Assembly: GCF_001194135.2 (NCBI RefSeq)
Contig: NC_068989.1
Span: 44,171,140 to 44,225,301, forward strand
Direction of reading: 5' to 3'
DNA: 54,162 bases
Source: Octopus bimaculoides
Lineage: Eukaryota
How positions within the stretch are numbered: the first letter of the stretch is position 1; every line of letters begins with the position of its first letter. The notes beneath the pieces were generated by a model. That model was not told the DNA's origin, made no database searches, and was given only the letters and a program-made list of their open reading frames with translations. Positions 640-53,037 of the stretch are shown one piece after another. Made by a program: the position numbers and the translations under genes.

Positions 640-1814
640 TTAATATGGGGTAGGATTGCCTTTGGCAGTAATTACAGCTTGCATTCTACAAGGTATGGAC
701 TCGTTCAAAATTTGAATTGTTTCCAAAGGAATTTTTGTCCATTCTTCAGCTAAAACAGTCTCCAGTTCTTGTAGTGATGATGGTGGAGGATATCTACTCC
801 TTGTTTTTCTAAACTGCACCATAAATGTTCAATGATATTGAGATCTGGGAACTGTGGTGGCCAGATAAGAAGTTCAACTTCACCAGAATGTTCCTCGTGC
901 CATTCAGTAACAACTTTAGCTGTGTGAATTAGTGCATTATCATCCTGAAAGATTGCGTTTCCCTCTAGAAACAGTTCTGCAACCATAGGATGAATTTGAT
1001 CAGATAAAATGCTTAAATAGTCTTGACTATTAATTCTGTCATGAAGGGAAACCATCGGGCCAGTGGATTTCCAAGATTCAGCCCCCAGATCATCACAGAT
1101 TCTCCTCTATGCTTAACAGTTAGAAGAAGGCAGTCTGGGTCAAAAGCTTCTTTTGGCTGTCTCCACACATATACTTGGTGGTTAGAAATAAGGTAAAGGA
1201 TGACTCATCTGAGGAAATAACATTCTTCCACTGCTCTAGGGATCAATTCAGTAGGTTTTTACTCCACTCTAAATGCTTTGCAATGTTTGTTTTGAAAGTA
1301 GTAGTTTTCTGATTGCAGCCCTCCCATGAAATCCAGCTTTGTGCAGCTCCCGGTGAATAGTTTTTGTGGAAACTGGGTTCTTGAAGTGGTCATTAAACTC
1401 TAACAATTCGCGTAAGAGTTCGATAGTCCCTATCTGAAAGTTTTGGTCTTCTTCTGGTGTCTTGTTTCGACGAGTTAGGTTTATTCCCTCTTTCTCAGAG
1501 GCTGTCATTACTTTCGAGACCGCACTTCTTGATACACCAAACATTTCAGCTGTTTTCATTATGCTAGTGCCTGCCATACAAGCACCAATAATTTGACCTC
1601 TTTGAAAGTCCGATAGAGCTGTCATTTTAATGAATTTTAATTACCTTTTTCTGATGATATCTGAAAAGAAATAGCAATTTTAGCAAAATATATTAAACAA
1701 CACTAATAATAAATCAAAAAATATAAAAATTAACAAGCTTTTGATGGCTTTATAGATATTTCAAAATTATGATGCTATGATACTAGGTGTTTCCATTATT
1801 TTGTCCAACCCCTG
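640..1814 (-). mobile_element. Tc1-like (DD34E) transposon, frameshifted, one TIR visible
   Basis: HTH N-terminus MTALSDFQRGQIIG, FQDDNA and WPPQFPDLNIIEHLW motifs; TIR CAGGGGTTGGACAAAATAATGGAAACACC ending at 1814, followed by TA. Confidence 0.9.
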
Positions 1815-2067: not shown

Positions 2068-2460
2068 CTACATTGTTGTGGGCAAGGTTGAGAATAGTCA
2101 ACTGGGAAAAAGGTATCTTGTCCTCCTTGTTTTCTCTCACAGGTCGTGTACTGTAGCAATTACAGGTTTTGATTCCTATGTCTAAAATGGGTACTTCACT
2201 TTCCTCTGATTCCTCTTCACTTGTCTCAAAAGAATACACATCAGAAGTGAGCACATCAGACTCAAATTCAGATTCAAGTTGCGATTCAGTTAGATGTGGA
2301 TGCGGATGCTCAGCATCTGATTCTGCTGCTGATGACGACAGTAGTGGTTCTTCCTTGATTTTCGGCTCTAGCCCAAGCAGATCAAAGGAGTCAAGAGGAA
2401 TTTCCTCATCATCCAGCCTTTCAGTAGTTTCCTTGATTTTTGACAGATTCATGAATAATT
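2068..2460 (-). CDS. XRRA1: XRRA1-like exon 9 (acidic region, then IPFSQLTILNLAHNNV LRR)
   Basis: Acceptor ccttctttctcttccatcag, donor G|GTGGTT; 393 nt, phase 1-1. Confidence 0.85.
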
Positions 2461-4703: not shown

Positions 4704-6839
4704 AGCACAGGGTTACATAATCAGACTGTTAGCTAACATTCCGTTGAAACCCCAATGCAAAATCAATTGGTAAGATCAGCTGTAATGGATATATAACACT
4801 ATGTTTTGCACTGCATTCTCCTTCACCACTCTCTACGCATGCTTTTTTGACAACGTCCTGTTACTTGTCAATAATATAAATAACCTAAGTTGTTTTTTTT
4901 TGTTTTTTTTTTGTACATACCTGTGGTGTGTGTCACACTTACTTCAAAAGAAGAGGTAAAAAGGTTGAAGGGAGAAGTACAACGAAAAAGAAAAATGAAA
5001 AGTGTTAAGCAGAGGAGGTATAGTTGAAGTGAGTGACAAAGCAGGAGGGAAGGGAGGGACAGAAGCAGAGGAAGTATAGTTGAAGCGAGAGGCAAAGCAG
5101 CAAAGAGGAAGTAAGAGGGAGTGAGAGAAGGGGGAGTTTGACAGTGCTGAGAAGTAAGAGAAATTAATGCATTATACGCAGGAGGACAGTTACAGGCAAG
5201 GAGATATAGAGAAGGGGGAGGGGAAAAGAGAGAGAGATTTAGAGAGATAGACTGAGTGAAGGAAGGGATTGGATAGAGAATAATAGTGAAATAGAATGGA
5301 ACCATTCTCGGATCTTTTTTAAAACGGGGGCCACATTTTTCATTAATGTTTTACGTAGTGTTTTTGGTACCGAAAGACTTTCAAACTTCGTATACTTATC
5401 TATTTTGTGTTATAGAACAGAAAAATATTTTTGTATTCGAATTTATTTCATGTAAAAAATAGTCTTATTTCGATAATTTCAACCAATCACTGACAAGTAT
5501 TCAGTTGTTTACATTTACTCCTTTGGCTCATTAAGCGATGTAAAGCGTATTTAATCTCCATACCTTNNNNNNNNNNNNNNNNNNNNNNNNNNNNNNNNNN
5601 NNNNNNNNNNNNNNNNNNNNNNNNNNNNNNNNNNNNNNNNNNNNNNNNNNNNNNNNNNNNNNNNNNNNNNNNNNNNNNNNNNNNNNNNNNNNNNNNNNNN
5701 NNNNNNNNNNNNNNNNNNNNNNNNNNNNNNNNNNNNNNNNNNNNNNNNNNNNNNNNNNNNNNNNNNNNNNNNNNNNNNNNNNNNNNNNNNNNNNNNNNNN
5801 NNNNNNNNNNNNNNNNNNNNNNNNNNNNNNNNNNNNNNNNNNNNNNNNNNNNNNNNNNNNNNNNNNNNNNNNNNNNNNNNNNNNNNNNNNNNNNNNNNNN
5901 NNNNNNNNNNNNNNNNNNNNNNNNNNNNNNNNNNNNNNNNNNNNNNNNNNNNNNNNNNNNNNNNNNNNNNNNNNNNNNNNNNNNNNNNNNNNNNNNNNNN
6001 NNNNNNNNNNNNNNNNNNNNNNNNNNNNNNNNNNNNNNNNNNNNNNNNNNNNNNNNNNNNNNNNNNNNNNNNNNNNNNNNNNNNNNNNNNNNNNNNNNNN
6101 NNNNNNNNNNNNNNNNNNNNNNNNNNNNNNNNNNNNNNNNNNNNNNNNNNNNNNNNNNNNNNNNNNNNNNNNNNNNNNNNNNNNNNNNNNNNNNNNNNNN
6201 NNNNNNNNNNNNNNNNNNNNNNNNNNNNNNNNNNNNNNNNNNNNNNNNNNNNNNNNNNNNNNNNNNNNNNNNNNNNNNNNNNNNNNNNNNNNNNNNNNNN
6301 NNNNNNNNNNNNNNNNNNNNNNNNNNNNNNNNNNNNNNNNNNNNNNNNNNNNNNNNNNNNNNNNNNNNNNNNNNNNNNNNNNNNNNNNNNNNNNNNNNNN
6401 NNNNNNNNNNNNNNNNNNNNNNNNNNNNNNNNNNNNNNNNNNNNNNNNNNNNNNNNNNNNNNNNNNNNNNNNNNNNNNNNNNNNNNNNNNNATACACACA
6501 TTGTTAAATTAAAAGCGGGACAGAGGTGGTACGGAGAGGAGGTATTTTCAGAGTAGACTGATACATACATCACAAAAAAAAGTAGATATATAAATCGAAA
6601 GAAAAGTTCTGTTGTGTCTGGGGAGAGTCATTTTCTTATCGTGCCTTAAAATTTAACACACTCACCGTTAAAATTTCCACTTATTATTTTTATTTTCCTA
6701 AAATTTTCGTTGCGTCTTGCAACCTTTTCAATAGTCTTGACTCTGTCCGTTATTCACGTTGCGTTCTGTTTTTGCTTTTCTTTTCTTTTTTTCTTCTTGT
6801 TTTTGCGCATGCGTGTGTCTCAGTGTGTGTGCATGTGTG

Positions 6840-9660: not shown

Positions 9661-11164
9661 TACATTCATACATACATATACATTTTAAAAATGGGGAAGG
9701 CTAGTTTAATGGATTACCCTGGGTTTCCCATCCATGAAAGATTTAGCTTCATGGTGTATAGTCAGACCATAAAACCTGTTAACCAAAGACCTTGTAGTAA
9801 CGCCGTGTGCAGTCTCACGCATGCGTGGAATTCAACAAGCAAGCTTTCCTGCTTCATTCTGTCTCTTTCTTGGTCGGCCGGCCATGAGCATGGACGTGTC
9901 AAGCAGTGTCTCCAACATTCCAACTCTGGNNNNNNNNNNTTTAGCTGTCTCACACCATCTTTAGGACTTACACTAGACAGCTCGCTTACATCTACATACC
10001 AACGTCCCAACAACAATGCTCACACACACAGAAGCTGTAACAACAAACAAGAGCTAAAGATGTATATATTTACAACCTGAATAAACGTTGTTTAAGTTGA
10101 TAGTCTGGAGTTCAGCGTTCCGTTATATTCATAATTTTATATAGGAAAGTCAGGTATACATCTAATGATGTATAACCCACTTTCCTATAACCTCTTCAAA
10201 ATATGGAGCGGGGAAAGCCCCATTATGAAGGTAACCAATAGGAGATTATCTCCCTTTAGCCTTTTGGGGACCGCAAGTTGGCAACAGCCAGAAGTCAATA
10301 GGTCATGGCAAAGGGAGATAATCCACTATTGTTTACCTTTGTAACCTTTTAGAGACCATAATATGGTGGCAGGTGGCACAGCCAGAAGTCAATAGCCAAT
10401 GACAAAGATAATCCCCTATTGTTTACCTTTTTNNNNNNNNNNNNNNNNNNNNNNNNNNNNNNNNNNNNNNNNNNNNNNNNNNNNNNNNNNNNNNNNNNNN
10501 NNNNNNNNNNNNNNNNNNNNNNNNNNNNNNNNNNNNNNNNNNNNNNNNNNNNNNNNNNNNNNNNNNNNNNNNNNNNNNNNNNNNNNNNNNNNNNNNNNNN
10601 NNNNNNNNNNNNNNNNNNNNNNNNNNNNNNNNNNNNNNNNNNNNNNNNNNNNNNNNNNNNNNNNNNNNNNNNNNNNNNNNNNNNNNNNNNNNNNNNNNNN
10701 NNNNNNNNNNNNNNNNNNNNNNNNNNNNNNNNNNNNNNNNNNNNNNNNNNNNNNNNNNNNNNNNNNNNNNNNNNNNNNNNNNNNNNNNNNNNNNNNNNNN
10801 NNNNNNNNNNNNNNNNNNNNNNNNNNNNNNNNNNNNNNNNNNNNNNNNNNNNNNNNNNNNNNNNNNNNNNNNNNNNNNNNNNNNNNNNNNNNNNNNNNNN
10901 NNNNNNNNNNNNNNNNNNNNNNNNNNNNNNNNNNNNNNNNNNNNNNNNNNNNNNNNNNNNNNNNNNNNNNNNNNNNNNNNNNNNNNNNNNNNNNNNNNNN
11001 NNNNNNNNNNNNNNNNNNNNNNNNNNNNNNNNNNNNNNNNNNNNNNNNNNNNNNNNNNNNNNNNNNNNNNNNNNNNNNNNNNNNNNNNNNNNNNNNNNNN
11101 NNNNNNNNNNNNNNNNNNNNNNNNNNNNNNNNNNNNNNNNNNNNNNNTATATATATATATATAT

Positions 11165-11320: not shown

Positions 11321-11431
11321 ACTGTTTGTGTATTTTTCATATCTGACCACTGAAACTGCAAAAATCTAACTGGAACTTACTGAACAACAACAACAACAAC
11401 AACAACAAAATCAACACAAAATATTACTTAC

Positions 11432-12880
11432 TCAGGTCTTCAATTGATGGAATCTCTTCCATTAAGAGCATATCATCAGACAAGTGAGAAGAAATAAATG
11501 ACTCGTGATTACTGAAATCATTTAAAACAGCAGAAACTGGAGTTCTTGCATCAAGTTCTTCAGTTAAACATCCACTGCAATAATCTTTACTGTCAGTATG
11601 TGCTTCATCTGTACAGATATGTGAGCCTTCCCTACTGGCAGAAAATGCTCCCAGACTTTCAGTAAATTCTACTACACTGCCATAGAGTTCTTCCTTACTA
11701 CTACATAATACTTCTCCATCGCTTTCTGGTTTTTCCGTACTTCCATACAATTCTTCCCTACTGCTATCTTTTCTTTTCCTACTGCCACGTAATCCTTCTC
11801 TACTTATACGTAATCTTTTTCTACTGACATCTGATCCTTTTCTGCTGCCATCTGATCCTTTTCTACTGACATCTGATCCCTTTCTACTGCCATCTGATCC
11901 CTTTTTACTGCCATCTGATCCTTTTCTACTGACATCTGATCCTTTTCTACTGCCATCTGATCCCTTTCTACTGCCATCTGATCCCTTTCTACTGCCATCT
12001 GATCCCTTTCTACTGCCATCTGATCCTTTTCTACTGCCATCTGATCCCTTTCTACTGCCATCTGATCCTTTTCTACTCCTAGGTGATCCTTTTCTACTGC
12101 CATCTGATCTTTCCCTGCTTCTCCGTAAGCATTCTTTTATATCTTCTTGAAGATCTTTATCACAGCAATGAGATGCTTTTCTAGTGCTAAGTAACAGTTC
12201 TCTATCACCATATGAGTCTTCCACATTGTACTGAAATTCTTCCTGAATACTGCTTAATTCTTCCTTACTGTTAGGTAATCTTTCCTTACTGTTAGGTAAT
12301 CTTTCTTTACTGTTAGGTAATCTTTCCTTACTGTTAGGTAATCTTTCTTTACTGTTAGGTAATCTTTCCTTACTGTTAGATAATCTTTCCTTACTACCAA
12401 ATGATCCTTCACTACTGCCAAATAATTCTTCGTTACTACTATGTACTTCTTCCCTCCTATCAGGTACCCTCCTTTCAGTTAAATCTTCCAGGCTACCAAT
12501 TGTTTTTTCTGTATGCCCAGTCTTTCCTTCTATACTACTAACTGATTCTTCTACATTGCTAAATGCTTCTCCAACATATTTTTGTTCTTTGCTGCTTTGT
12601 GATTTATCGTCACTGATATATAACACTTCTCTACTGCCAGGTAATGCTACTTTACTGGCAAGTGATTCATTTTCACTCAAAGATAATTCTTCCTCAGTGT
12701 CATGTAACACTTCAAGTGGCTGATTTTCTCTGTCATGGATTTCTTTGTTGAGATCTTGGCATTTTAGGTTTTCATCTTCAAGTGTTCTTTCTGCTTGATC
12801 TGAAGGTTTCTGGTATTCCACATCTTCAACGGCTGCTTTTGGCTTTTCCAAAGTCTTCTCTTTCTGGTTCTCATCAAGAA
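11432..12880 (-). CDS. XRRA1: XRRA1-like exon 8, giant low-complexity exon (483 codons) with 7-aa repeats
   Basis: Acceptor tttatttctaaatttag at 12881, donor GTAAGT at 11431; 1449 nt with no stop; phase 1-1, matching exons 7 and 9. Confidence 0.85.
11818..12111 (-). repeat. Coding 21-bp minisatellite, about 14 units, (SRKGSDG/V)n
   Basis: atctgatcc recurs every 21 bp from 11829 to 12060 (12 units), plus two diverged units at 12081 and 12102. Confidence 0.97.
12262..12396 (-). repeat. Coding 21-bp minisatellite, 6 units, (SKERLPN)n
   Basis: ttaggtaatctttc recurs every 21 bp from 12271 to 12355, plus an LSN variant at 12376. Confidence 0.97.
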
Positions 12881-13290
12881 CTAAATTTAGAAATAAATGG
12901 ATTTATTTGAAGCAGGTTACACCAAGTTTTGTAGCTAATAGTAGAGGAAATGGACAAGGTCAACAGTAATGATTTCAATATATTCTTTGTACATAAACTG
13001 ACTCTAGAGAGGGATGAAAAACAGGGTCAAATAAGAATTACGAGAACAAATTTAAAACATGAAACAACATCATAACCTTCTTTTAGGTTTTTAGCTTTAT
13101 CATGTATCAATATCTCAAAGAGCTCAGTGAATTAGAATATTATTACCCTTAATTTGGTAATAGGAAATGGCATTAGTAGGCATCCACCTGTAGAAACAAT
13201 GTCAAATTTGACACTGAAACTCTGCATCTCACAAGATCCTGTGAAACCATTCGACCAATGATAGCATGGAAAAAGGACATGAAATGATGG

Positions 13291-17655: not shown

Positions 17656-17807
17656 CTCTGAAATAACCGGTTTCCTTTCTTTCCAGTTCTGGTGGCTGAA
17701 TATCCTGCATAAAACTGTCCACTGGAGGAAATATGTTTTCTGTACTCTCCTTCTCCAAACGAGGAATGTGGTAGATGGAGTTTCCTTCAAGGTCTAAATA
17801 TATCAAG
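17656..17807 (-). CDS. XRRA1: XRRA1-like exon 7 (LIYLDLEGNSIYHIPRLEKES...ETGYFR)
   Basis: Acceptor gttctgtttgcag; donor G|GTTAAC at 17655; 152 nt, phase 2 to 1. An in-phase alternative donor GTTATT 12 nt upstream makes the 3' edge slightly uncertain. Confidence 0.85.
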
Positions 17808-24004: not shown

Positions 24005-24391
24005 ACTAAGAGCGTGATTGTTGCCAGAGCAGCTGTCTGGCTTCCGTGCCAGTGGCATGTGAAAAGACATTTGAGCGAGATTGTTGCCAGTACCTCCTGA
24101 CTGGCCTTCGTGCCGGTGGCACGTAAAATACACCAACATCGCCTTCCTGGCACTTGTGCCAGTAGCACGTGAAAAGACATTCGAGCGAGATCGTTGCCAG
24201 TACCTCCTGACTGGCCTTCGTGCCGGTGGCACATAAAAGCACCCACTATACTCTCAGAGTGGTTGGCGTTAGGAAGGGCATCCAGCTGTAGAAACTCTGC
24301 CAAATCAGATTGGAGCCTGGTGTAGCCATCTGGTTCACCAGTCCTCAGTCAATCATCCAACCCATGCTAGCATGGAAAGCGGACATTAAAC

Positions 24392-25287: not shown

Positions 25288-25392
25288 TGAGTTATATTTG
25301 CCAGAGGTATGAAGATGTCAGGACTTTCCAGTTTGTTGTAATCCAATTTTAATACTTCTAGACGGGGAAATCGGACATATCGAACCTTTGTA
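25288..25392 (-). CDS. XRRA1: XRRA1-like exon 6 (TKVRYVRFPRLEVLKLDYNKLESPDIFIPLANIT)
   Basis: Acceptor tttcttatctttctcag, donor GTAAGT; 105 nt, phase 2-2; one LRR; absent from the ORF track. Confidence 0.9.
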
Positions 25393-25949
25393 CTGAGAAA
25401 GATAAGAAACATTTTGTAGGATTTTCACTTAACACACACTCACACACACACCGCTCATTTATGATTTATTTAAGGGCCATTCTTGCATAACATATGTGAC
25501 AATCAGACACACACACACACACAAATTATGAATTATCTAAGCTGTAAATCTTGAACGTTAACAAGAATTGTACAGATTCATCTTACATAGTAAATAAAGT
25601 TTCTCTACCCTGGCAAGGACACTGCTAATGTGACAAAGACATTTGTTTACAACTATCACATGATGTCAAGATGGGGAATCACTAACACATACATACACAT
25701 GCACACACACACACACACATAATGTTTTCAAATTTTGGCACAAGGCCAGCAATTTTAGGGGAGGGTAAGTCGACTACATCAACTCCAGTGTTCAACTGAT
25801 ACTTATTTTATCGACTCTGAATGGATGAAAGGCAAAGATGACCTTGGCAGAATTTGAACTCAGAACGTAAAGATGGACAAAATGTTACTAAGCATTTTGC
25901 CTGGCATGCTAACAATTCTGTTAGCTCAACACCTTATATAGAAACATAA

Positions 25950-27559: not shown

Positions 27560-27705
27560 CTGTCTGACAATGAGAAACATTGCGTGGAATCTACTGGCAG
27601 GAATGATATGTTGTTGTTTCCTAAATTTAGGTACTGTAGATTTGGCATCAATCCTAAACATTGGAAACAGTCTCCTGTTAGGTTATTGTAAGAAAGATCA
27701 AGATA
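27560..27705 (-). CDS. XRRA1: XRRA1-like exon 5 (YLDLSYNNLTGDCFQCLGLMPNLQYLNLGNNNISFLP...)
   Basis: Acceptor T-run+cag, donor GTTAGC; 146 nt, phase 0 to 2; two LRR motifs. Confidence 0.92.
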
Positions 27706-27723
27706 CTGAAAAAAAAAAATAAC

Positions 27724-29019: not shown

Positions 29020-29725
29020 ATTTCAAATTTTGGCACAAGGCCAACAATTTCAGGGGGAGGTGATAAGCCAGTTTCATCAACCCCAGTACTCAACTGGTAG
29101 TTATTTTATCAACCCTGAAAGGATGGCAGGTAAAGTCAACCTTGGCAAAATTTGAACTCAGAACATAGAGATGGACAAAATGTTGTTAAGCATTTTGCCT
29201 GGTGTGCTAATAATTTTGACATCTCACAACCTTAAACACTTTGTGCCGCATACCAACAACTCTGCCAGTTTACTGTGTAATAATAATAATAATACTTTCT
29301 ACTATAGGCACAAGACCTGAAATTTTGGGGGAGGGGACTAGTCAGTTACATCAACCCTGTTTCACTGGTACTTAATTTATCGACCCTAAAAGGATGGAAG
29401 GCAAAGTTGACCAAGGCAGAATTGAACTCAGAACATAGCAGCATACAAAATACTGCTAAGCATTTTGTCCAGTATGCTAACGATTTTGCCAGCTCACTAC
29501 CTTAATAATAATAGTCCTTTCTACTATAGGCACAAGGCCTGAAATTTGGGGGAGGGGTAAGTCGATTACATCGACCCCAGTACTCAACTGGTACTTAATT
29601 TATTGATCCTTAAAGGATGAAAGGCAAAGTCGACCTCGGCGGAGTTTGAACTCTGAACGTAGTGACAGGTGAAATACTACTAAGCATTTCACCCAGCATG
29701 CTAACGTTTCTGCCAACTTACCACC

Positions 29726-29799
<74 letters not shown>

Positions 29800-30867: not shown

Positions 30868-31174
30868 TACTTGAGAAGACCCAGCCACCACAACAGAATT
30901 GAGATCCTAAAATCAAGGTGCCACGTAAAAAATACCAGTGCTGGTGCCACGTAAAAAGTACCAGTTCTGGTGCCACTTAGAAAGCACCTATGATGATACC
31001 GCATAAAAAGCACCCAGTACACTCTGTGGAGTGGTTGGCATTAAGAAGGGCATCTACCCATAGAAACCAAGCCAAAACAGACCATGGAACTTGGTGCAGC
31101 CCCTGGCCTTACCAGTTCCTGTCAAACCCTATGCCAGCATGGAAAATGGACAGTAAATGATGATGATGACGATG
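30868..31174 (+). mobile_element. RTE-family 3' tail fragment with about 4 GGTGCCACGTAAAAA modules
   Basis: Modules about 26 bp apart from about 30917, then the family 3' end and (GAT)n. Confidence 0.8.
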
Positions 31175-33483: not shown

Positions 33484-33825
33484 TATATCATCATCATTAT
33501 CATTCAACATCTGTTGTCCATGCTGGCATGGGTGGGATGGTGTGACCAGAGATGGCAAACTAGTGGGATGCAGCAGACTGCAGTCTGATTTGGCATGGTT
33601 TCTATGGGTGGGTGCCCTTCCTAATGCCAACCACTTTACAGATAGTGCTGGGTGCATTTACATGGAATCACACAGATGCTTTTATGTGGCACCACATGGG
33701 CACTTTTATGTGGCACTGTACGGGTGCTTTCATGTGGCACCGCATGGGTGTTCTGATATGGCACTGCCTGGGTACTTTTACGTGACACCATATGAGCACT
33801 TTTATGTGGCACTGCCATGATTGCT
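33484..33825 (-). mobile_element. RTE-family 3' tail fragment with about 7 tandem 24-bp modules; a shorter tail lies at about 33950-34125(-)
   Basis: Repeated gggtgcttttacgtggcacc-like unit at about 33645-33820. Confidence 0.8.
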
Positions 33826-34536: not shown

Positions 34537-34634
34537 CTGAAGATGTGGAAATTCACCAAAGCTCACACTTAAATTCGTTAGTTTGTTTAATGGTAGTTTA
34601 AGTTGTACCAGGCGACTGAATGATGCAAATGTCT
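34537..34634 (-). CDS. XRRA1: XRRA1-like exon 4 (ETFASFSRLVQLKLPLNKLTNLSVSFGEFPHLQ)
   Basis: Acceptor ccatctcttttag, donor GTCAGT; 98 nt, phase 1 to 0; LxxLxLxxNxL motif. Confidence 0.9.
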
Positions 34635-36169
34635 CTAAAAGAGATGGGAGGGAGAAAAAAATTCAGAAAATACATGTACTATTGATTTCCTGACATTAAA
34701 GAACTTGTGTACTTGAGAAATAGGAAGACTGGTGGAAGACCTTGCTTTCAATGCCCCAGCCAAAAAATATAAAGAAAAAGCAGACAGGCAGCATATAGAC
34801 AGACAGACAAATAGACAAGCAGACGGGGGCGGGGAGTCAGACAGACAGACAGGGAAAGTAGGTAGGTAGACAGGCAGGGAAAAAAAGAAACTAGACAGAT
34901 TGACAGATGTGATAATTAAAGAGATAGCTAGATAGAATGATGGATATTTTAAACAGACAGGCAAGTAGATGAGACAGATGGATTGATAAACAGATAGATG
35001 GACAAACAGACAGAAGTATGAGCTATTTCCTTTGAACACTATTCCTGTCTTGTAAGTATTCAATGAGGATGATTCTTTTGTAAATTTATAGAATGCTCAT
35101 GTTTCATTTTTTAAATATTTTCTGCAGCCTTGGTTTCTCTTTTTGCCTTCAACTTGTCAGAGAAAAGTCTGAGTTTGTCAAAGATTTCTATGGTTAATTG
35201 TCCTACAGATGAGAAAATTTCTTCCAAAACCAGTGACAAGGAGAGTATTTATAGGCAACCATTTTGAAACATGCAGCTGCTCTTCCCTGATTAGAAATTC
35301 ACATTTACACCAATAATAATTGGTGCAGGTGGTTTTGTTAATAAATGTTTAAGTGACAATCTAGGAAAGCTAGGATTCCCAAGCAAAGAAAATTACAAAC
35401 TGTCACACACTGCAAAACAGAAACAGTAAAAATGTGCATTTATAAGACTTTTCTAAAGCTAAGCATGTAACACTTATCATTGTAGTTAATCCAAATTCCA
35501 ATGGAGGAGTTTTATTTCCTTGTTAGAAACTAGTTCCTTCTTTGAAGAAAGAATTAAAATAATTATAACTGAATAATAGACACAAATCATATATGCATAC
35601 AGCAAGATACATACAACATTCATAAATAGAGTGCACATACATACAAACAAATGTGTGTGTGTGTGTGTGTTTATTTTTATGTTGAGTAATAATAAAGACA
35701 ATTTAACAAAGAATTACTCAGTACTTTTCTGTAGAGTACATATTTATAATACACAAGTGCATTTTATGTAGCACCAGCACATGTAAAGGACAAGCCTGTA
35801 TGTATGGATGGCAGTGATTTTACTTAGCTTGGTGTGTTTTCTCATGTAGAGTAAATTGTCAGAATTCCCAGTCCTTCGTCATTTAAGAGGCTCAGCATCC
35901 AAAGATCCTTTCTCACCACTTATCCCACATCTTTCTGGCTCTACCCCTTTCACAGGTTTCCACCACAATTAGAGCTCAGCAACAAAATAGAAATAAAATT
36001 TTACCATTTATTGTTTCTGTGTAGTCTGATCCAGTACCAAATGACCCATGGCCCGAAACTGATTTACAGCCTGGTGGTTGGAGACCCCTATTCTACAGGG
36101 TTAGCAATTAATGAGCAAAACTGTTAAAAAAAAAAAAAAAAAGAAGGGAAAAACTTCATTCTCACATAC

Positions 36170-36314
36170 CTAATTTCAAAAAATTATCTTCAGCATCAAT
36201 GATTTCCAAGTTTATGAAGAAATGAAAATCTTCAGTATTGGCAAGATTTAGTCCTTGGTTTGAGATTTTCAAGCTGAATACATCTTCTGGATCAGTAACT
36301 TTGCAATATTTCAG
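36170..36314 (-). CDS. XRRA1: XRRA1-like exon 3 (LKYCKVTDPEDVFSLKISNQGL...IDAEDNFLKL)
   Basis: Acceptor ttttccccttctag, donor GTATGT; 145 nt, phase 0 to 1; first LRR-like unit. Confidence 0.9.
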
Positions 36315-40955: not shown

Positions 40956-41093
40956 TAATTTACTACTATAAAACTCCTAACTTTAATCAGAAATATCCTG
41001 AAAGTCAACAATCTTATGCATATCAAGTTGCATGAAGTAACAATTTTCAAACTAACCAAATTATTAATATGACTGAAACCTTGTACAACTTAC

Positions 41094-41266
41094 AATATAA
41101 TGAGTATCAAAAAGAAAGGAAGTTTTTCCCCAAATGCCTTTACTAGATTTTCTACTTGTATGTCGTTTTAATTCTTTCTTGATTTCCTCATTGGACATAA
41201 TCTTTGTTTTTAATACAGTATTAAGACGGCGCAGCTGTTCCGCTTTGTAAGCCTGCAACCATGCAC
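41094..41266 (-). CDS. XRRA1: XRRA1-like exon 2 (GAWLQAYKAEQLRR...FDTHYI)
   Basis: Acceptor ttttgtatattaccag, donor GTAAGT; 173 nt, phase 1 to 0. Confidence 0.88.
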
Positions 41267-41875
41267 CTGGTAATATACAAAAGAAGTGATTTTTCAGTCA
41301 GAGCTTTTTTTAATAATATGCTTCAGACTAAAGTAGATGTGCTGTAGTGATAGTGTGCACATGTGCATAAAAATTAATGGTAGTTACCAGAGTAGATGTG
41401 CCAAAGTTACGGTGTACATGTGCATGCAACAACTGATGATGGTGATCAAAGTATATCTGTAAACAGATACCATGGGGTAGTTCCATATCATTATGATAAA
41501 CAGTGAGAACACTGCAAAATTTTGTAAAATCACTGTATGCCTCATTAGCTTCCAGTATTTAGTTCAAGTCCTACTGTTGGAGGGGAAAAGCAGCAAATAG
41601 CCACTGCTATATCATTAATACAATAATACATAACATTGTTTTTTCCTTACTAGCAAGGGCTACACAGGGATTTATTTGAGGCAGTGTCACCAACCGTTAC
41701 CTATTTTTCAACTAAGGGATTTTTTTTTTTATTGCAATGGTCTTTGAAAATGCAGAGCAACCAGATTACATGTTAACAAAGACTGTAAAAATCATGTTAC
41801 CATTTCATGAAGATAGTGACAAGCAAAGCAAACAAATGCCAACCTTTATGTACATACAAAATATGCACATCATAT

Positions 41876-43929: not shown

Positions 43930-46520
43930 AATTCTCTCATACTTCACTCTCCCCCTCTCAAACTTCGAACAACCATCATGAACTATCTTCCTCCATCCAT
44001 CATGGTCTTGTGCCTCCCTCTCCCAATTACCAGCTGCAATTCCTGTCTGTATTAGAGCATTTTTAAAGCAATCCTTAAACCTTAGTTTAGGCTTATGCGC
44101 TGGTCTCCTGCCATCTTCCAGCTCACCAGTCGCTCATCACTCATCCTTACCAAATGTTCCCCCCCTACCTCAAATGTCCTTGCAAAATGACTCTATACTT
44201 CTACTGCCACTCCTCTCAAGCACCTCCACATTACTAATGGCCATTTTCCAGTTTATCCCCAAAATTTTTCTCAGACAGTATTGATGAAGTCGCATTTACC
44301 AAGTGCTGCAAATCTTTCTGAGAATGTGCCAACAGGTCACAATCATTTGCATACAGAAACTCAACAAGGTGAGAATGCAGAACTTTCGTTTTGAAACAGA
44401 GTCTTTTGAAATTGAACAGTTTTCCTGTTGTCATATATCTTATATAGGCCCCTTTGGGGCAATCTTTAAAAGCTATTTGAAAGACTATTGCAAAATATAT
44501 AGCAAACAGTGTAGGAGAAGGAATATCACCTTGCTTTACACCAGTTTCTACAGAAATTGGATCTGATAAGGTACTCCAAAATTAACTCTCACTTCCATTT
44601 TGTCATGAACTTGTCTAAGCATTCTCACAAATTTTTCAGGGCATCCTAGCTTTTTTATGATCTCCCAAAGTGCAATTCTATTGATAGAATCAAACCCTTC
44701 TGTTAGGTCAATGAAAACTTGGTATAAGTCCATATCCTGTTCTATGCACTTCTCTTGCAACTGTCTAGCCAAAAATATCATGTCCATAGTACTCCTACTA
44801 TCCCTAAACCCACATTGCAATTCTGGTAGAACCTCATCAGCAATGTGCAGAAGCAATCTGTCCAGCATTACCCTAGAAAGGACCTTTCCAGCAACAGCTA
44901 ACAGATAGATGCCACAATAATTATCACTGACATCCTTTCCACCGTCAGATTTATATAGTATTTCCATAGTTGCATCACGCCAATCCGGAGGAACCTCTTC
45001 ACTTTGCCAAACTCTCTGAATCACATCCGTCAACATTGTACAAAGATGATCACCACCATATATATCTCTGCACCTAGTCCATCATACCAGGGGCTTTGCA
45101 TTGTTCAATTCCTTGATTGCTGCTTTTATTTCAGCCAGGTTTGGAACTTTTGTTATAAGATATTTTATTGGTCTCTTGGGTATATTATCAAGAAAAGAGA
45201 GATCAACTTCAGTGGGTCTATTGAGCAACTCATCAAAATGTTCTTTCCATCTCCCAACAATATCTTTAGGATTTGTTAATAATTCTGTGCCATCCTTGCT
45301 CCAAAGTGGCGCACCTTTGATGAAACTGGTCCACAAACGTTGTTCAAGAGAGAGTAAAAAAGTTTTGAAATGTTAGCATTTGAAGCTGCTTGGCTTTCAT
45401 CACATCTATCACTCCACCAATTTTCCTGCATCATCTGTAGCTTCCTCAGCACTGTTGCTTTTACAGCCTTGAAATATGTAGCTACTGTCCTGTTCGTTGA
45501 CATGTCAACATTTTGCAACATGTTAAATGCCTTTCACTTCTCCTCTAAGATAAGATTAACTTCTTCATCATTATCGTCAAACCAATCTTGGTGTTTTTTT
45601 TACAACAAAGCCACTTTCTTTGAATGACTTCCAGCTTCCATCACAGGACAAATTATTTATCTCACTCACAAACTCATTGCGACTGACGGAATCTTAAGTT
45701 TATTCACATCAATCCATTTAGGTAATTTGTCATTATTTATTCTAACCTTAGGCTTGACAACAAAATTCACCTTGGCACGCAAAAGCCTATGATCAGTCCA
45801 GCACTCTGCACCACTCATACAATAGCAAAGTCCCTAGTATCTCATTTCCTGGTGAGGATGTAATCTATAAGAAGTCATTTCTTAGAACTAGAGTGTATCC
45901 ATGTCGTTTTATACTTATTCTTTCATGACACACAAATCCATTTCTACACACATTTGTAACAGTAGCAAACCATTACTGTTGGAACTCTCAACCCCATGCT
46001 TTCCTAGGACACCCCAAGTCTCCCAATCTGCACCAACACGAGCATTAAAATCACCCAAAATGACAACTTTGTCATCATGGGGGATATCGCGTATAATCTC
46101 TGTAAGTGACAGAAGGCAAGTTTATCATCCTCTGATGAATTCATAGTTGGAGCATATGCACTTATATGTGTCGCATAGCAACTTTTTCTTAATAGCAGCC
46201 GTAAAGACATTAAACAATCCGAATGACCACATGGTAGTTCCTCAAGTTTTGAAGCCAGAATGGTTTTGATAGCATATCCCACTCCTGATTCTTTCTTATA
46301 GGTCTCCTCTCTACCGCTCTAAAAGAAATGATATCCAGCAGATTTCTCTACGAAATTCCCCTTTCCATGAATTCTTGTTTCAGCTAACGCTACAACATCC
46401 ATATCATATCGCTGCAACTCTTTTGCAACAAGCGCAGATTTTCTCTCTGGACGAGATTTCAGACAATCATTGTCTAATAACATTCAAACATTCCAACATC
46501 CTCTACTCATAGGCTTGCAT
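43930..46520 (-). mobile_element. RTE-clade LINE, decayed: endonuclease, RT (YAND) and C-terminal piece, with internal deletions
   Basis: WNV, ALAETR, SAYAPT, GDFNARVG, QCGFRDSRSTMDMIF..RQLQEK, FIDLTEGFDSINR, FLYANDC, then NVEVLERSG..PAHKPKLRFKD at 43930-44235. Confidence 0.9.
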
Positions 46521-49500
46521 CTTAACTTAAATTTACTCACAGTTGCAGGATGACAACCAGATCCAGGCTGTGGTGCCCTGGGACACCTGCCGGGCCAGAC
46601 CACAGAACAAAATGTTCCAGAGTCCTTTTTGCCATTTACTTCATTATCAATATGAACTTTTGTTGTTTAGACGTGCCTTTTTAAGCTTCGGCCAGCCATG
46701 TACATACAAGATGTCCATTTCTTTTTCCTCTCCAGCAATACCTGTGCTTCACACTTTTTAAAGTGAGGAAAAGTTTTGCACGGCAACCATTCCCACTCTC
46801 TAAACTACAAAGCATGATCCAAAAAGAAGAGCAAGTCAACACCATTGGGTGCATTTGCAGTCGCAGGTTTTATATCAGAGTGTCCTTCTCCCAGTCTTTG
46901 CCCAACCAAAGGCTAACTACAAGACAGCAGTGAAGTATTTAAATTCAGAGTTACTTTCTCCTAGATAGACTGCCTTCGCCATGGCTTGGGTAAACAGAGG
47001 AGCTCTATCCACCCGTCATCTATTTATAAAAAAAAAAATTAAAATAAGAGAAATACAAATTAAAAATTGGGATAAAAACTGAGTAAATTTTAAAATAAGA
47101 TAGACATACAACATATACCATTTAAAAACACAATATACAATATGTACATACACATGCTGAAATACAGNNNNNNNNNNNNNNNNNNNNNNNNNNNNNNNNN
47201 NNNNNNNNNNNNNNNNNNNNNNNNNNNNNNNNNNNNNNNNNNNNNNNNNNNNNNNNNNNNNNNNNNNNNNNNNNNNNNNNNNNNNNNNNNNNNNNNNNNN
47301 NNNNNNNNNNNNNNNNNNNNNNNNNNNNNNNNNNNNNNNNNNNNNNNNNNNNNNNNNNNNNNNNNNNNNNNNNNNNNNNNNNNNNNNNNNNNNNNNNNNN
47401 NNNNNNNNNNNNNNNNNNNNNNNNNNNNNNNNNNNNNNNNNNNNNNNNNNNNNNNNNNNNNNNNNNNNNNNNNNNNNNNNNNNNNNNNNNNNNNNNNNNN
47501 NNNNNNNNNNNNNNNNNNNNNNNNNNNNNNNNNNNNNNNNNNNNNNNNNNNNNNNNNNNNNNNNNNNNNNNNNNNNNNNNNNNNNNNNNNNNNNNNNNNN
47601 NNNNNNNNNNNNNNNNNNNNNNNNNNNNNNNNNNNNNNNNNNNNNNNNNNNNNNNNNNNNNNNNNNNNNNNNNNNNNNNNNNNNNNNNNNNNNNNNNNNN
47701 NNNNNNNNNNNNNNNNNNNNNNNNNNNNNNNNNNNNNNNNNNNNNNNNNNNNNNNNNNNNNNNNNNNNNNNNNNNNNNNNNNNNNNNNNNNNNNNNNNNN
47801 NNNNNNNNNNNNNNNNNNNNNNNNNNNNNNNNNNNNNNNNNNNNNNNNNNNNNNNNNNNNNNNNNNNNNNNNNNNNNNNNNNNNNNNNNNNNNNNNNNNN
47901 NNNNNNNNNNNNNNNNNNNNNNNNNNNNNNNNNNNNNNNNNNNNNNNNNNNNNNNNNNNNNNNNNNNNNNNNNNNNNNNNNNNNNNNNNNNNNNNNNNNN
48001 NNNNNNNNNNNNNNNNNNNNNNNNNNNNNNNNNNNNNNNNNNNNNNNNNNNNNNNNNNNNNNNNNNNNNNNNNNNNNNNNNNNNNNNNNNNNNNNNNNNN
48101 NNNNNNNNNNNNNNNATATATATATATATATATACATGTATGTGAGAAAGAGAGAATACAATCAATACATAACATATGGAACAAAATCGATACGTATCAT
48201 AACTGAGTGCATAATCGATATGTAACATATGAAACAATCAGTAATGTAACAAGGCATGTCACATTTAATAGGAAACATAATAGAGATGGCTATCCATGCG
48301 TAACATAACAGATAAGAATCGATATCAAGCGATGAATATGTAACTTAATATATTATACAACATAATCAATAGGTAAACAGGATCTTATTCAAAATATAAT
48401 AGAAAAGCTCGCGGAGAAAAGTAATTAAAACACACCTATAGAACAGGACTGAATGATGCGGTTGATAAGGCAGATCAATAAGCAATATTAGTGTAGGGGA
48501 ATATATAATGGAAATATCTCGCAAGATCAGTTAAACTAATAGCCATAACCATCAGTGACAGGAAATCGTGAATATATCGAGGTAAAAACATAATGTAGAG
48601 CTAAATACGGTGAAATGAGAACTGGATTCTGTTGATGAAAGAGATAAGAGTGATTTAACGCGAAAGGGTAACTGATAGGGAAAAGGCAGAGTATGTATGT
48701 ATATATATNNNNNNNNNNNNNNNNNNNNNNNNNNNNNNNNNNNNNNNNNNNNNNNNNNNNNNNNNNNNNNNNNNNNNNNNNNNNNNNNNNNNNNNNNNNN
48801 NNNNNNNNNNNNNNNNNNNNNNNNNNNNNNNNNNNNNNNNNNNNNNNNNNNNNNNNNNNNNNNNNNNNNNNNNNNNNNNNNNNNNNNNNNNNNNNNNNNN
48901 NNNNNNNNNNNNNNNNNNNNNNNNNNNNNNNNNNNNNNNNNNNNNNNNNNNNNNNNNNNNNNNNNNNNNNNNNNNNNNNNNNNNNNNNNNNNNATATATA
49001 TACGCGCGCACACACATTCGTTGATATTTTAATGCAATAACATTTTCCCCCTTTGAATTATTTTATGAAATGGGTAATTGTGTTGCAAATAAAGCCCAAC
49101 ATTGTCTCACGTACACATGTAACAAGTACCGCCGACGCGATCCACATTAACCAAAAGCAATCCTTTTTTTTCCTTAGTGACTTTATACCTAATTAACAAA
49201 AAAAATCATCATTAACAACGTTTTCATTATTAATATTATATCCATTATTATTGCTACAGTAACTTTTGTGGGTTCGATTCCTAGTTGTAGCCTAGCCAGC
49301 CCAGTGTACTTACATCGCTAAAAAAATCATGTCAGCCCCAATCTATTTTCTATTCCCTATAAATACAAGACAATGGTCCGAGTTAAGATCAATATAAGGC
49401 AGTGAGTCTAGACAGAAATCAATACAAAACATTGTGCCTTGGTAGTTACAAAATCAATTAAAAAAACATAAAAACTGAAAGCAAATTAAGACTATATATA

Positions 49501-49538
49501 AAGTATGGGTTTATGAATGTTTCCAGTAAGAAACTAAC

Positions 49539-49665
49539 CATAGGAAATTACTCCATCTCGCAGTCTTATCGGGAAGTAATTGCCTAAATAAACTCGTGGC
49601 TCTGTGTAGCGGCTTGAGTTACTGCTGCTATCACTTCGGATATTTGTAATCTTCTTTGCCGCCAT
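49539..49665 (-). CDS. XRRA1: XRRA1-like exon 1 (MAAKKITNIRSDSSSNSSRYTEPRVYLGNYFPIRLRDGVISY-G)
   Basis: aaaATGG start context; 42 codons + 1 nt; donor G|GTTAGT phase 1; YLGNYFPIR resembles the XRRA1 N-terminal motif. Confidence 0.8.
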
Positions 49666-51878: not shown

Positions 51879-53037
51879 GATTTTTTAATAAACAAGCTTC
51901 GAATTTACAAGGAAAATGGAGAAAACTGAGTATCGTGCTGTCATAAAGTACCTTCATTTGAAAGGCGTGACTCCATCAGAAATCCATGAAGATATGGTGA
52001 GAACCTTAACAGACAATGCTCCTTCACATGCAACAGTCAAACACAGGGTAAATGAATTCAAGCGTGGCAGGGAGAGTGTGGAAGATGATCCAAGACCAGG
52101 GAGACCTCCAACTGCAACCACCAAGGACAACCTTGACCTTGCTCTTGGTATGATAATGCAAGATCGCCGAATATCATGTCGTCAGATAGCCGAGAGACTG
52201 GGCATCTCAACTGAAAGAGTAGACAACATTGTGACAAAATAACTTGGGTTCTCAAAGGTTTCTGCAAGGTGGGTTTAGCCTTTTGACTCCTGAACAGAAA
52301 CGCACCAGGTGCAATTTGTCCACGAGCAATCTGGAACTGTTTGAAGCTGATGAAGAAAATTTTCTTGCTCGTTTCATTACTATGGACGAAAGTTGGGTCC
52401 ACCACTACCAGCCTGAAACCAAAGAACAATCAAAGCAGTGGAAGCACACATCTTCTCCTACCCCAAAGAAGGCCAGGGTTATTCCTTCAGCTGGCAAGGT
52501 CATGGCGTCCGTTTTTTGGGGATTGTCAAGGTGTCTTGCTCATCGATTACCTTGAAAAGGGTTACACCGTGACAGGGCTGTATTATTCTCAGCTACTGAA
52601 ACGCCTCCGAGAAGCAATCAAAGAAAAAAGGCCGGGAATGCTCATCAGAGGAGTCCTTTTTTATCACGACGATGCTCCAGCCCACACCTCAGTGGTTGTC
52701 ATGGCAACAATTTGTGATTGTGGATACGAACTTGTTCCCCATCCGCCTTATTCGCCAGACTTAGCCCCCTCTGACTTTCATCTATTTCCAAAAATGCAAA
52801 AAAAAAGCCCTGGCTGGTCGCCATTTTGCCAGTGACAATGCCGTCATAGATGCTGTAGGAAGTTTCTTGGAGTTCTAAACAAAAGAGTTCTTCTACGCCG
52901 GGATAATGGCGCTTCAGCACCGCTGGAGAAAGTGTTCAGCCATCGAGGGGGACTATGTTGAAAAATAAATCATCAGAAGTCTTGTAACATGTTTTTTTTT
53001 TTTTTTTTTAGGCTCAAGACTTTTCAAACACTCCTCG
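51879..53037 (+). mobile_element. Mariner (DD34D, irritans-like) transposase pseudogene; left TIR in the gap
   Basis: MEKTEYRAVIKY, ITMDESWVHHY, KVMASVFW, HDDAPAH, HPPYSPDLAPSDFHLF, GDYVEK*; right TIR ggctcaagacttttcaaacactcctcg|ta ends at 53037; stops and frameshifts. Confidence 0.93.

Follow-up and report, generated by a model that had tools for sequence, protein, structure and literature searches.

We analysed a 54,162-nt stretch of Octopus bimaculoides DNA (hereafter the window; contig NC_068989.1 of assembly GCF_001194135.2, the stretch being part of CM046609.1 in GCA_001194135.2), and focused on a giant internal coding exon on its minus strand at 11432-12880. An earlier reading of the letters alone, here called the original prediction, had attributed this exon to an XRRA1 gene and described it as the product of an ancient 21-bp minisatellite. 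With a probability of roughly 0.78, we believe it to be a genuine giant exon of an uncharacterised leucine-rich repeat (LRR) gene, LOC106873252, which was built by growth of a coding minisatellite and in which some units were later re-amplified or homogenised. On this reading a single exon would display three stages of a coding minisatellite (decayed orthologous units, a shared homogenising array and a freshly expanded array), and a 1.45-kb exon can grow amid neighbours of 102-177 nt without a break in the reading frame. Growth of disordered regions by tandem repeats, together with concerted evolution, is already well known, and no new class of mechanism is involved.

The giant exon of LOC106873252

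The exon is 1449 nt long with phase 1/1 (2 nt + 482 codons + 1 nt) and contains no in-frame stops, whereas the two remaining sense frames hold 15 and 80; the stop-free reading that runs through it extends over 492 codons. Its splice acceptor AG lies at 12881-12882 on the minus strand (...ctaaatttAG; ...TTTCTAAATTTAG / TTCTTGATGA) and is followed from 12880 by the first exon bases, TTCTTGATGAG, while the exon end leads into a GTAAGT donor at 11426-11431 on the same strand (GAAGACCTGA / GTAAGTAATATT; reading GTAAGTaat). Phases fit at both joins: at 17656, upstream, GGT TAT TTC AGA G/gt gives GYFR-V-LDENQ with valine from the split codon G/TT, and at 2460, downstream, ag/AA TTA TTC ATG gives IEDL-K-LFMNL with lysine from A/AA. 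The NCBI model XP_014776026.1 (LOC106873252, "uncharacterized protein", 1018 amino acids (aa)) uses identical junctions (17656/12880 and 11432/2460). The giant exon supplies aa 316-799 of this protein, the first and last of them from split codons, and aa 317-798 match at 100%. Using tblastn, aa 316-798 were placed at window positions 12881..11433 with 100% identity, and the protein as a whole was placed as nine exons, all on the minus strand, at 49665..49530, 41267..41091, 36314..36171, 34638..34537, 27708..27562, about 25394..25290, 17807..17656, 12880..11432 and 2460..2072. As the neighbouring exons measure 102-177 nt, the giant exon exceeds them in length about tenfold. Open reading frames on the plus strand across the arrays (PSDPFLL...) and in another frame (MAVEKDQ...) were considered and rejected as by-products of the repeat.

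On its upstream side, the exon at 17656-17807 (minus strand; placed by phase fit, Pfam and tblastn) carries the last LRR before the insert (LIYLDLEGNSIYHIPRL...GYFR). Downstream, the exon at 2072-2460 (minus strand) opens with an acidic stretch (11 K+R vs 31 D+E) and then enters the next LRR (IPFSQLTILNLAHNN). In the annotated O. bimaculoides protein the spacer from HIPRL to PFSQL is 632 aa long, in line with the figure of about 630 aa given originally. The flanking exons match the Pfam families LRR_8 (4e-15) and LRR_4 (4e-14), and the same families match the full proteins. Based on these Pfam LRRs and on gene models from two species, we take 11432-12880 to be a real coding exon of an LRR protein.

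The identity of the host gene as XRRA1 is a separate matter. In the flanking exons and the full proteins, Pfam shows only generic LRR families, which are not specific to XRRA1, and the name is absent from the source annotation, where XP_014776026.1 and its Octopus sinensis counterpart XP_036362238.1 are both listed as "uncharacterized protein"; this lowers the standing of the XRRA1 assignment without refuting it. For human XRRA1, a leucine-rich repeat and a PEST sequence have been described (PMC5634579); it is thus LRR-containing, as is the octopus protein. In the PDB, the sequences of the LRR part, the exon and the two termini of the octopus protein matched generic LRR receptors only or nothing, and a word-indexed protein search with the LRR exons and an N-terminal profile returned generic LRR proteins only, mostly from plants. 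With the whole exon, the word-indexed search produced 8000 low-complexity candidates and no match, but as it also missed both octopus proteins in the same collection, even with their own sequences as queries, its silence is uninformative on XRRA1 or orthologues. A literature search found no paper mentioning the LOC or XP identifiers of the octopus proteins, and one combining XRRA1 and molluscs found no paper naming XRRA1; a 2026 preprint on XRRA1 gives no description of its domains.

It could be argued that the exon is not constitutive, and is instead an optional cassette, or that a purine-rich minisatellite of the intron was annotated ab initio as an exon. Its symmetric phase would keep a direct 17656-2460 join in frame (G/AA), its length stands far outside that of its neighbours, the XP_ records are predicted, and several isoforms are known for O. 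sinensis. Such an origin fits poorly with the exon's two non-repeat ends (67 and 47 codons), which are open in the same frame and of which the C-terminal one is 81% identical between species. It also fits poorly with the whole stretch of 444-482 aa, which for all its 32% divergence and several indels contains no stop and keeps the frame in either species. The GTAAGT donor agrees with the consensus, and RGAAR motifs (GAA-type, enhancer-like) occur at 37 per kb in the exon compared with 4 per kb in the intron. The sense strand of the exon is also 65% purine, against 48-49% in the flanking introns, and this density of purine-rich, GAA-type sequence may aid recognition of a very long internal exon. 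We give the cassette or misannotation reading only a slight chance and retain the genuine coding exon.

Clean and decayed 21-bp units

Tandem Repeats Finder (TRF) reported two main period-21 arrays in the exon, at 11758-12109 (16.8 copies, 87% matches, score 487) and at 12261-12395 (6.4 copies, 95% matches, score 249), together with weaker period-21 rows at 12380-12439 and 12527-12577. Resolved into units, clean array 1 (11826-12098, minus strand) consists of 13 units of AGTAGAAARGGATCAGATGGC (SRKGSDG) with a mean pairwise identity of 0.91, of which 12 are within 3 mismatches of AGTAGAAAAGGATCAGATGGC (11826-12077) and one is an edge unit, SRKGSPR (12078-12098). Clean array 2 (12270-12395, minus strand) holds six units of AGTAAGGAAAGATTACCTAAC (SKERLPN) with a mean pairwise identity of 0.96. 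A consensus search of the 54-kb window found neither consensus elsewhere, with about 0 chance matches expected. Variation within the arrays is mainly synonymous (the Lys codons AAA/AAG), with a recurrent GGC/GTC change as well, and the variants are common to non-adjacent units. The two unit consensuses agree at 12/21 positions in register, while the best of the other 20 cyclic shifts gives 9, and the common core that had been noticed in the two arrays is thereby confirmed. As expected of a coding minisatellite, the units lie head to tail above chance, their 21 bp equal seven codons in an open spliced frame, and copy number differs between species (see below).

The repeat is not confined to these arrays. 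To assess periodicity outside them, we set the share of DNA matches at lag 21 against a null made by shuffling codons, and three regions of the exon stood out: aa 68-161 (0.53 vs 0.31, z = 7.4), aa 204-259 (0.44 vs 0.29, z = 4.0) and aa 351-435 (0.53 vs 0.31, z = 7.2). In each of them lag 21 scored highest among all lags between 3 and 63, and in the two outer regions (aa 68-161 and 351-435) the protein-level BLOSUM score at lag 7 was also raised, with z = 4.5 and 5.1. No significant signal at lag 7 or lag 21 was found by the same test in aa 1-67 and aa 436-482. The periodic footprint thus covers about 368 aa (window positions ~11574-12677), or about three quarters of the exon, and amounts to some 50 heptads when read in register with few slips. 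The heptad register claimed around the arrays, small slips included, was confirmed by this test, and its extent had been put too low, at roughly 300 aa.

Alignment of 31 decayed units gave the consensus AGTAGAGAAGAATTATATGGC (AGT AGA GAA GAA TTA TAT GGC), which encodes SREELYG. Its columns are S (21/31), R/K, E/K (23/31), E, L/S, a mixed position at which Y is commonest, and G/S. Both clean arrays match this consensus in register, array 1 at 17/21 and array 2 at 13/21, and in each case this is the best of the 21 cyclic shifts; across all the consensus comparisons (decayed, array 1 and array 2), out-of-register shifts gave at most 10/21. Units of intermediate sequence (SRERSDG, SREGLRG and SRKRLRI) adjoin the arrays. 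Together, the TRF arrays, the periodicity outside them at z = 4-7, and the positional orthology of the decayed units described below bear out the proposal that the exon was built from an old minisatellite of 21 bp, or seven aa.

Read along the minus strand, the exon begins with a non-periodic acidic part (aa 1-67, 12678-12880, net charge -12). This is followed by decayed units upstream of the arrays, with small slips (SENESLA ... SNEELFG SSEGSFG; 12396-12677, z = 7.4), by array 2, and by the inter-array decayed units at 12099-12269 (z = 4.0), which run SKEELSS IQEEFQY NVEDSYG DRELLLS and continue as TRKASHC CDKDLQE DIKECLR, one additional aa and SRERSDG. Beyond array 1, the decayed units at 11574-11825 (z = 7.2) start with SRKRLRI SREGLRG SRKRKDS SREELYG and continue with STEKPES DGEVLCS SKEELYG SVVEFTE .... 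The exon closes with a non-periodic C-terminal part (aa 436-482, 11432-11573), which is its best-conserved portion, at 81% identity to O. sinensis.

Near-identical tandem units are prone to assembly error, and both the homogeneity of the arrays and their copy number might in principle be an artefact of collapsed or mis-joined short reads. The window contains 14 N gaps, one of which starts 285 bp downstream of the exon; a 273-bp array probably exceeds short-read length, and the sole copy found belongs to the same assembly (GCA_001194135.2). Among the N runs in the window are those at 10433-11147, 5567-6491 and 47168-48115, and they limit trust in exact repeat copy numbers. No Ns occur between 11148 and 13582, however, variant sites (AAA/AAG, GGC/GTC and AGA/AAA) are interspersed among the units in a non-periodic order, and the independently assembled O. 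sinensis protein has an equal number of SRKGS units. An artefact is in our view very unlikely, and we continue to treat the arrays as products of minisatellite growth.

Comparison with Octopus sinensis

The O. sinensis orthologue, XP_036362238.1 ("uncharacterized protein LOC115216585 isoform X3"), has an equivalent exon of 444 aa, which aligns to the window in a single frame, at 61% over 493 aa (tblastn). As O. sinensis has an equivalent exon, the insert predates the split between the two species. The N-terminal LRR parts of the two proteins are 84% identical; the figure is 68% for the giant exon, 71% for the exon that follows and 85% beyond it, and the indels between the two giant exons are all in-frame; the LRR-to-LRR spacer of 632 aa in O. 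bimaculoides has a counterpart of 592 aa in O. sinensis. Because the downstream exon (2072-2460) is acidic and only 71% identical to O. sinensis, the fast-evolving low-complexity spacer extends past the giant exon. This downstream exon also contains a short 12-bp repeat at 2256-2288.

A search of 1.84 billion representative proteins with the giant exon recovered XP_014776026.1 and XP_036362238.1, and no other protein among these representatives matched the non-repeat parts of the exon. The insert had been called lineage-specific, and this term can be kept in the sense that it is common to two Octopus species and that its non-repeat parts match none of the other representatives. The remaining matches from this search were rejected as unrelated low-complexity repeats (e.g. 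GSDGTRS), as none of them matches the octopus N- or C-terminal parts or the non-repeat flanks. A gecko protein (XP_077202735.1, Paroedura picta) carries a long run of SKERRPS/SKEQRPS heptads at aa ~1700-2066, which we regard as convergence with SKERLPN and not homology.

The decayed and clean units differ in how they compare between the two octopuses. Decayed units at the same position in the two species have an identity of 0.605, while those within either species (~0.27) or at different positions between species (0.27) are far less alike; the decayed flanking units are therefore positionally orthologous, and hence old; relative to them, the two clean arrays are young. Both species have 13 units in the SRKGS array, which aligns without gaps, yet its units are nearly as similar between species at different positions (0.687) as at the same position (0.703), and within-species identity is 0.885 in O. 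bimaculoides vs 0.636 in O. sinensis. The preferred residue at position 7 of the unit is G in O. bimaculoides and D in O. sinensis, and the O. sinensis array is heterogeneous, with local runs of its own (HD/CD/YD, VS/VS, DD x4). Units more alike within a species than between species, as expected under concerted evolution, were thus found for SRKGS in O. bimaculoides, not within O. sinensis (0.636), and the relation is reversed for the old units. We read the pattern in the SRKGS array as a signature of concerted evolution that is strongest in O. bimaculoides.

The same array could also have been homogeneous in the common ancestor, so that it was kept in O. bimaculoides and altered by point mutations in O. 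sinensis. Equal unit number, gapless alignment and the shared SRKGS core are all compatible with retention. A hand count of deviations from SRKGSDG gave ~6/91 residues in O. bimaculoides vs ~27/91 in O. sinensis, while the rest of the exon has diverged to ~68% and the degenerate units to 61%. The local runs in O. sinensis indicate turnover there too, and the species-specific consensus at position 7 (G vs D) is a classical sign of concerted evolution. Retention of an ancestral array thus seems doubtful to us, and concerted evolution is the reading that we prefer.

Array 2 has a different history. O. bimaculoides has six SKERLPN units and O. sinensis has one (..SREELCV DKERLPN IKEELSS..), a difference that can be copy-number expansion in the former or loss in the latter. 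Given the single O. sinensis unit and the 96% DNA identity among the six, it is most simply explained as a recent expansion in the O. bimaculoides lineage. The original prediction had described both arrays as recently homogenised, and our comparison divides the two: this description suits SRKGS in O. bimaculoides (0.885 vs 0.70/0.69), while SKERLPN is instead a change in copy number (6 vs 1).

From these patterns, a plausible history of the exon can be proposed. An ancestral 21-bp unit, roughly AGTAGAGAAGAATTATATGGC (S-R-E-E-L-Y-G), would have been amplified in frame before the split of O. bimaculoides and O. sinensis, and most units would then have decayed independently. Since 21 bp make seven codons, each amplification event keeps the reading frame. 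Later, two variant units may have been re-amplified or homogenised via replication slippage, unequal exchange or gene conversion, with SKERLPN going from one copy to six in the O. bimaculoides lineage and the 13-unit SRKGS array being homogenised to SRKGSDG. The product would be a spacer rich in Ser, Glu, Lys, Arg, Gly and Asp within the LRR region, in which basic blocks (+6 and +15) lie between acidic segments.

The spacer as a protein and its surroundings

Of the residues encoded by the giant exon, Ser accounts for 17%, Glu for 13%, and K, R, G, D and L for 8-9% each; S+E+K+R+G+D together make up 64%. The net charge alternates along the exon in blocks of -12, -9, +6 (SKERLPN), -5, +15 (SRKGSDG), -2 and -10, after which comes the acidic downstream exon. 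A single-sequence AlphaFold2 (AF2) model of the exon has a mean predicted local distance difference test score (pLDDT) of 47, with 374 of the 482 residues below 50. The arrays score 41-47 and show no secondary structure, and helices are predicted only outside them, at aa 27-51 (pLDDT ~80) and aa 205-259 (block-mean pLDDT 47-68). For the full-length protein, an AF2 model from a two-sequence alignment has a mean pLDDT of 32, and LRR stacking across the insert is not readable from it. As a polar and charged low-complexity sequence for which no confident fold was predicted, the spacer of about 480 aa is probably intrinsically disordered, and on our best reading of its sequence the segment is largely a length-tolerant linker. 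A coiled-coil interpretation of the heptads was rejected, as Ser/Gly recurs at every seventh residue and AF2 places no helix in the arrays.

Several points weigh against our interpretation. That the exon is included in the transcript is deduced from predicted gene models and frame conservation, and the AF2 model of the exon was made from a single sequence, so that its low pLDDT is weak evidence of disorder. With one comparison species and no outgroup, expansion of SKERLPN is not formally separable from contraction in O. sinensis, and in the same two-species comparison homogenisation of SRKGS in O. bimaculoides is not separable from faster decay in O. sinensis. That comparison was made at the level of protein sequence. 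Finally, the contigs look short-read derived and the window has 14 N gaps, so the exact copy number of the 273-bp near-identical array may be wrong.

One further explanation would add to minisatellite growth rather than replace it: the clean arrays may be a selected functional module, acting as a tunable multivalent phospho-acceptor or charge block, with unit number under stabilising selection even as their sequence changes. Array 1 contains 12 R-K-x-S motifs, out of 14 R-[RK]-x-[ST] motifs in the whole exon, which also has 20 S-x-E motifs, most of them in the older units; the RKGS motifs (basophilic-kinase type) and S-x-E motifs could be multisite phospho-acceptors, and the alternating charge blocks would suit such a role. 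In addition, the array has 13 units in both species despite its lost positional orthology, and nearly every unit in either species keeps the S-R-K-G-S core unchanged, with variation concentrated at positions 6-7. Motif matches in low-complexity sequence are cheap, however, the agreement in unit number between two species may be coincidental, and the exon, at 68% identity, has changed faster than the LRR parts (84-85%). We consider selection on the arrays possible but unlikely. A more specific version, in which the SRKGS array is a selected multivalent switch whose valency (13 R-K-G-S sites) is constant across octopus species while its units turn over by gene conversion, is more doubtful still. 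If true, it would constitute an octopod-specific, phosphorylation-tunable basic block inside the acidic linker of a conserved LRR scaffold, and if the host is really XRRA1, a protein that is widely conserved and poorly understood would have been elaborated specifically in cephalopods.

There are some known systems with which this exon can be compared. Involucrin is built of short codon-block repeats in one exon, with older and "modern" segments, the latter added in different primate lineages. The octopus exon resembles it as a single large exon of in-frame short units in which old decayed copies lie beside young near-identical ones, with lineage-specific additions and a charged, flexible product. 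It differs in unit length (7 codons vs 10 in involucrin) and in its host, an LRR protein as opposed to a cornified-envelope precursor, and there is no sequence relationship between the two. Phosphorylated repeat tails are also known from the KSP repeats of neurofilament-H and the heptads of the RNA polymerase II C-terminal domain (CTD). These share with the octopus segment, itself probably disordered, short (6-8 aa) Ser-containing units in many copies, a disordered state and a potential for multisite phosphorylation, and the octopus unit of 7 aa (21 bp) has the same length as that of the CTD. The octopus consensus is unlike KSP or YSPTSPS, and its phosphorylation is suggested by the RKGS and S-x-E motifs only. 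Insertions into LRR solenoids occur as the island domain of BRI1 and the Z-loop of TLR9. In all three a non-LRR segment interrupts a run of LRRs, in the octopus protein between ...IYHIPRL and IPFSQLTILNLAHNN, and TLR9 was the weak top PDB match for the octopus N-terminal part. The BRI1 and TLR9 loops are ~30-70 aa long and folded or cleavable, in contrast to the 632 aa of the octopus segment, which appears unstructured. Another coding minisatellite is the zinc-finger array of PRDM9, which shows concerted evolution and species-specific arrays (PMC3890296, PMC8925151). Both are tandem coding units evolving by unequal exchange or conversion, putatively so in the octopus, but the 84-bp units of PRDM9 code for folded zinc fingers whose DNA-contact residues are under positive selection, while the octopus unit is 21 bp and low-complexity. 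Coding minisatellites that make disordered regions have also been covered in surveys of metazoan repeats (PMC5100051).

With regard to annotation, the analysis documents LOC106873252 as a real gene, with a model that an assembly gap has cut in two. Downstream of this model and outside the window, past an N gap (L001 71599-74252), L001 74253-80954 holds exons that match O. sinensis aa 936-1177; they are annotated as a separate 276-aa gene, and XP_014776026.1 is truncated. The real O. bimaculoides protein is probably about 1200-1250 aa long. O. sinensis isoform X3 is without a 35-aa exon that encodes one LRR (TKVRYVRFPRLEVLKLDYNKLESPDIFIPLANIT, window 25290-25394, minus strand), which suggests alternative skipping of this single LRR exon.

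The window holds several other elements. Decayed remnants of Tc1/mariner-type transposases are found in the downstream intron (753-1640, minus strand; DDE_3 and HTH_Tnp_Tc3_2) and in the first intron (51892-52832, plus strand; HTH_48 (Mos1) and Transposase_1), and a fragmented non-LTR (long terminal repeat) retrotransposon frame with RVT_1 matches lies within an intron on the gene's strand (44237-46318, minus). Tandem blocks of 24-26 bp or 48-64 bp occur at 24010-24132, 30917-30988 and 33650-33815 with a common motif such as GGTGCCACGTAAAAAGCACC, and look like an interspersed element resembling a SINE (short interspersed nuclear element) with internal repeats. At 29281-29740, between long TAA microsatellites, a tandem array comprises 2.1 copies of a 224-bp unit (80% identity).

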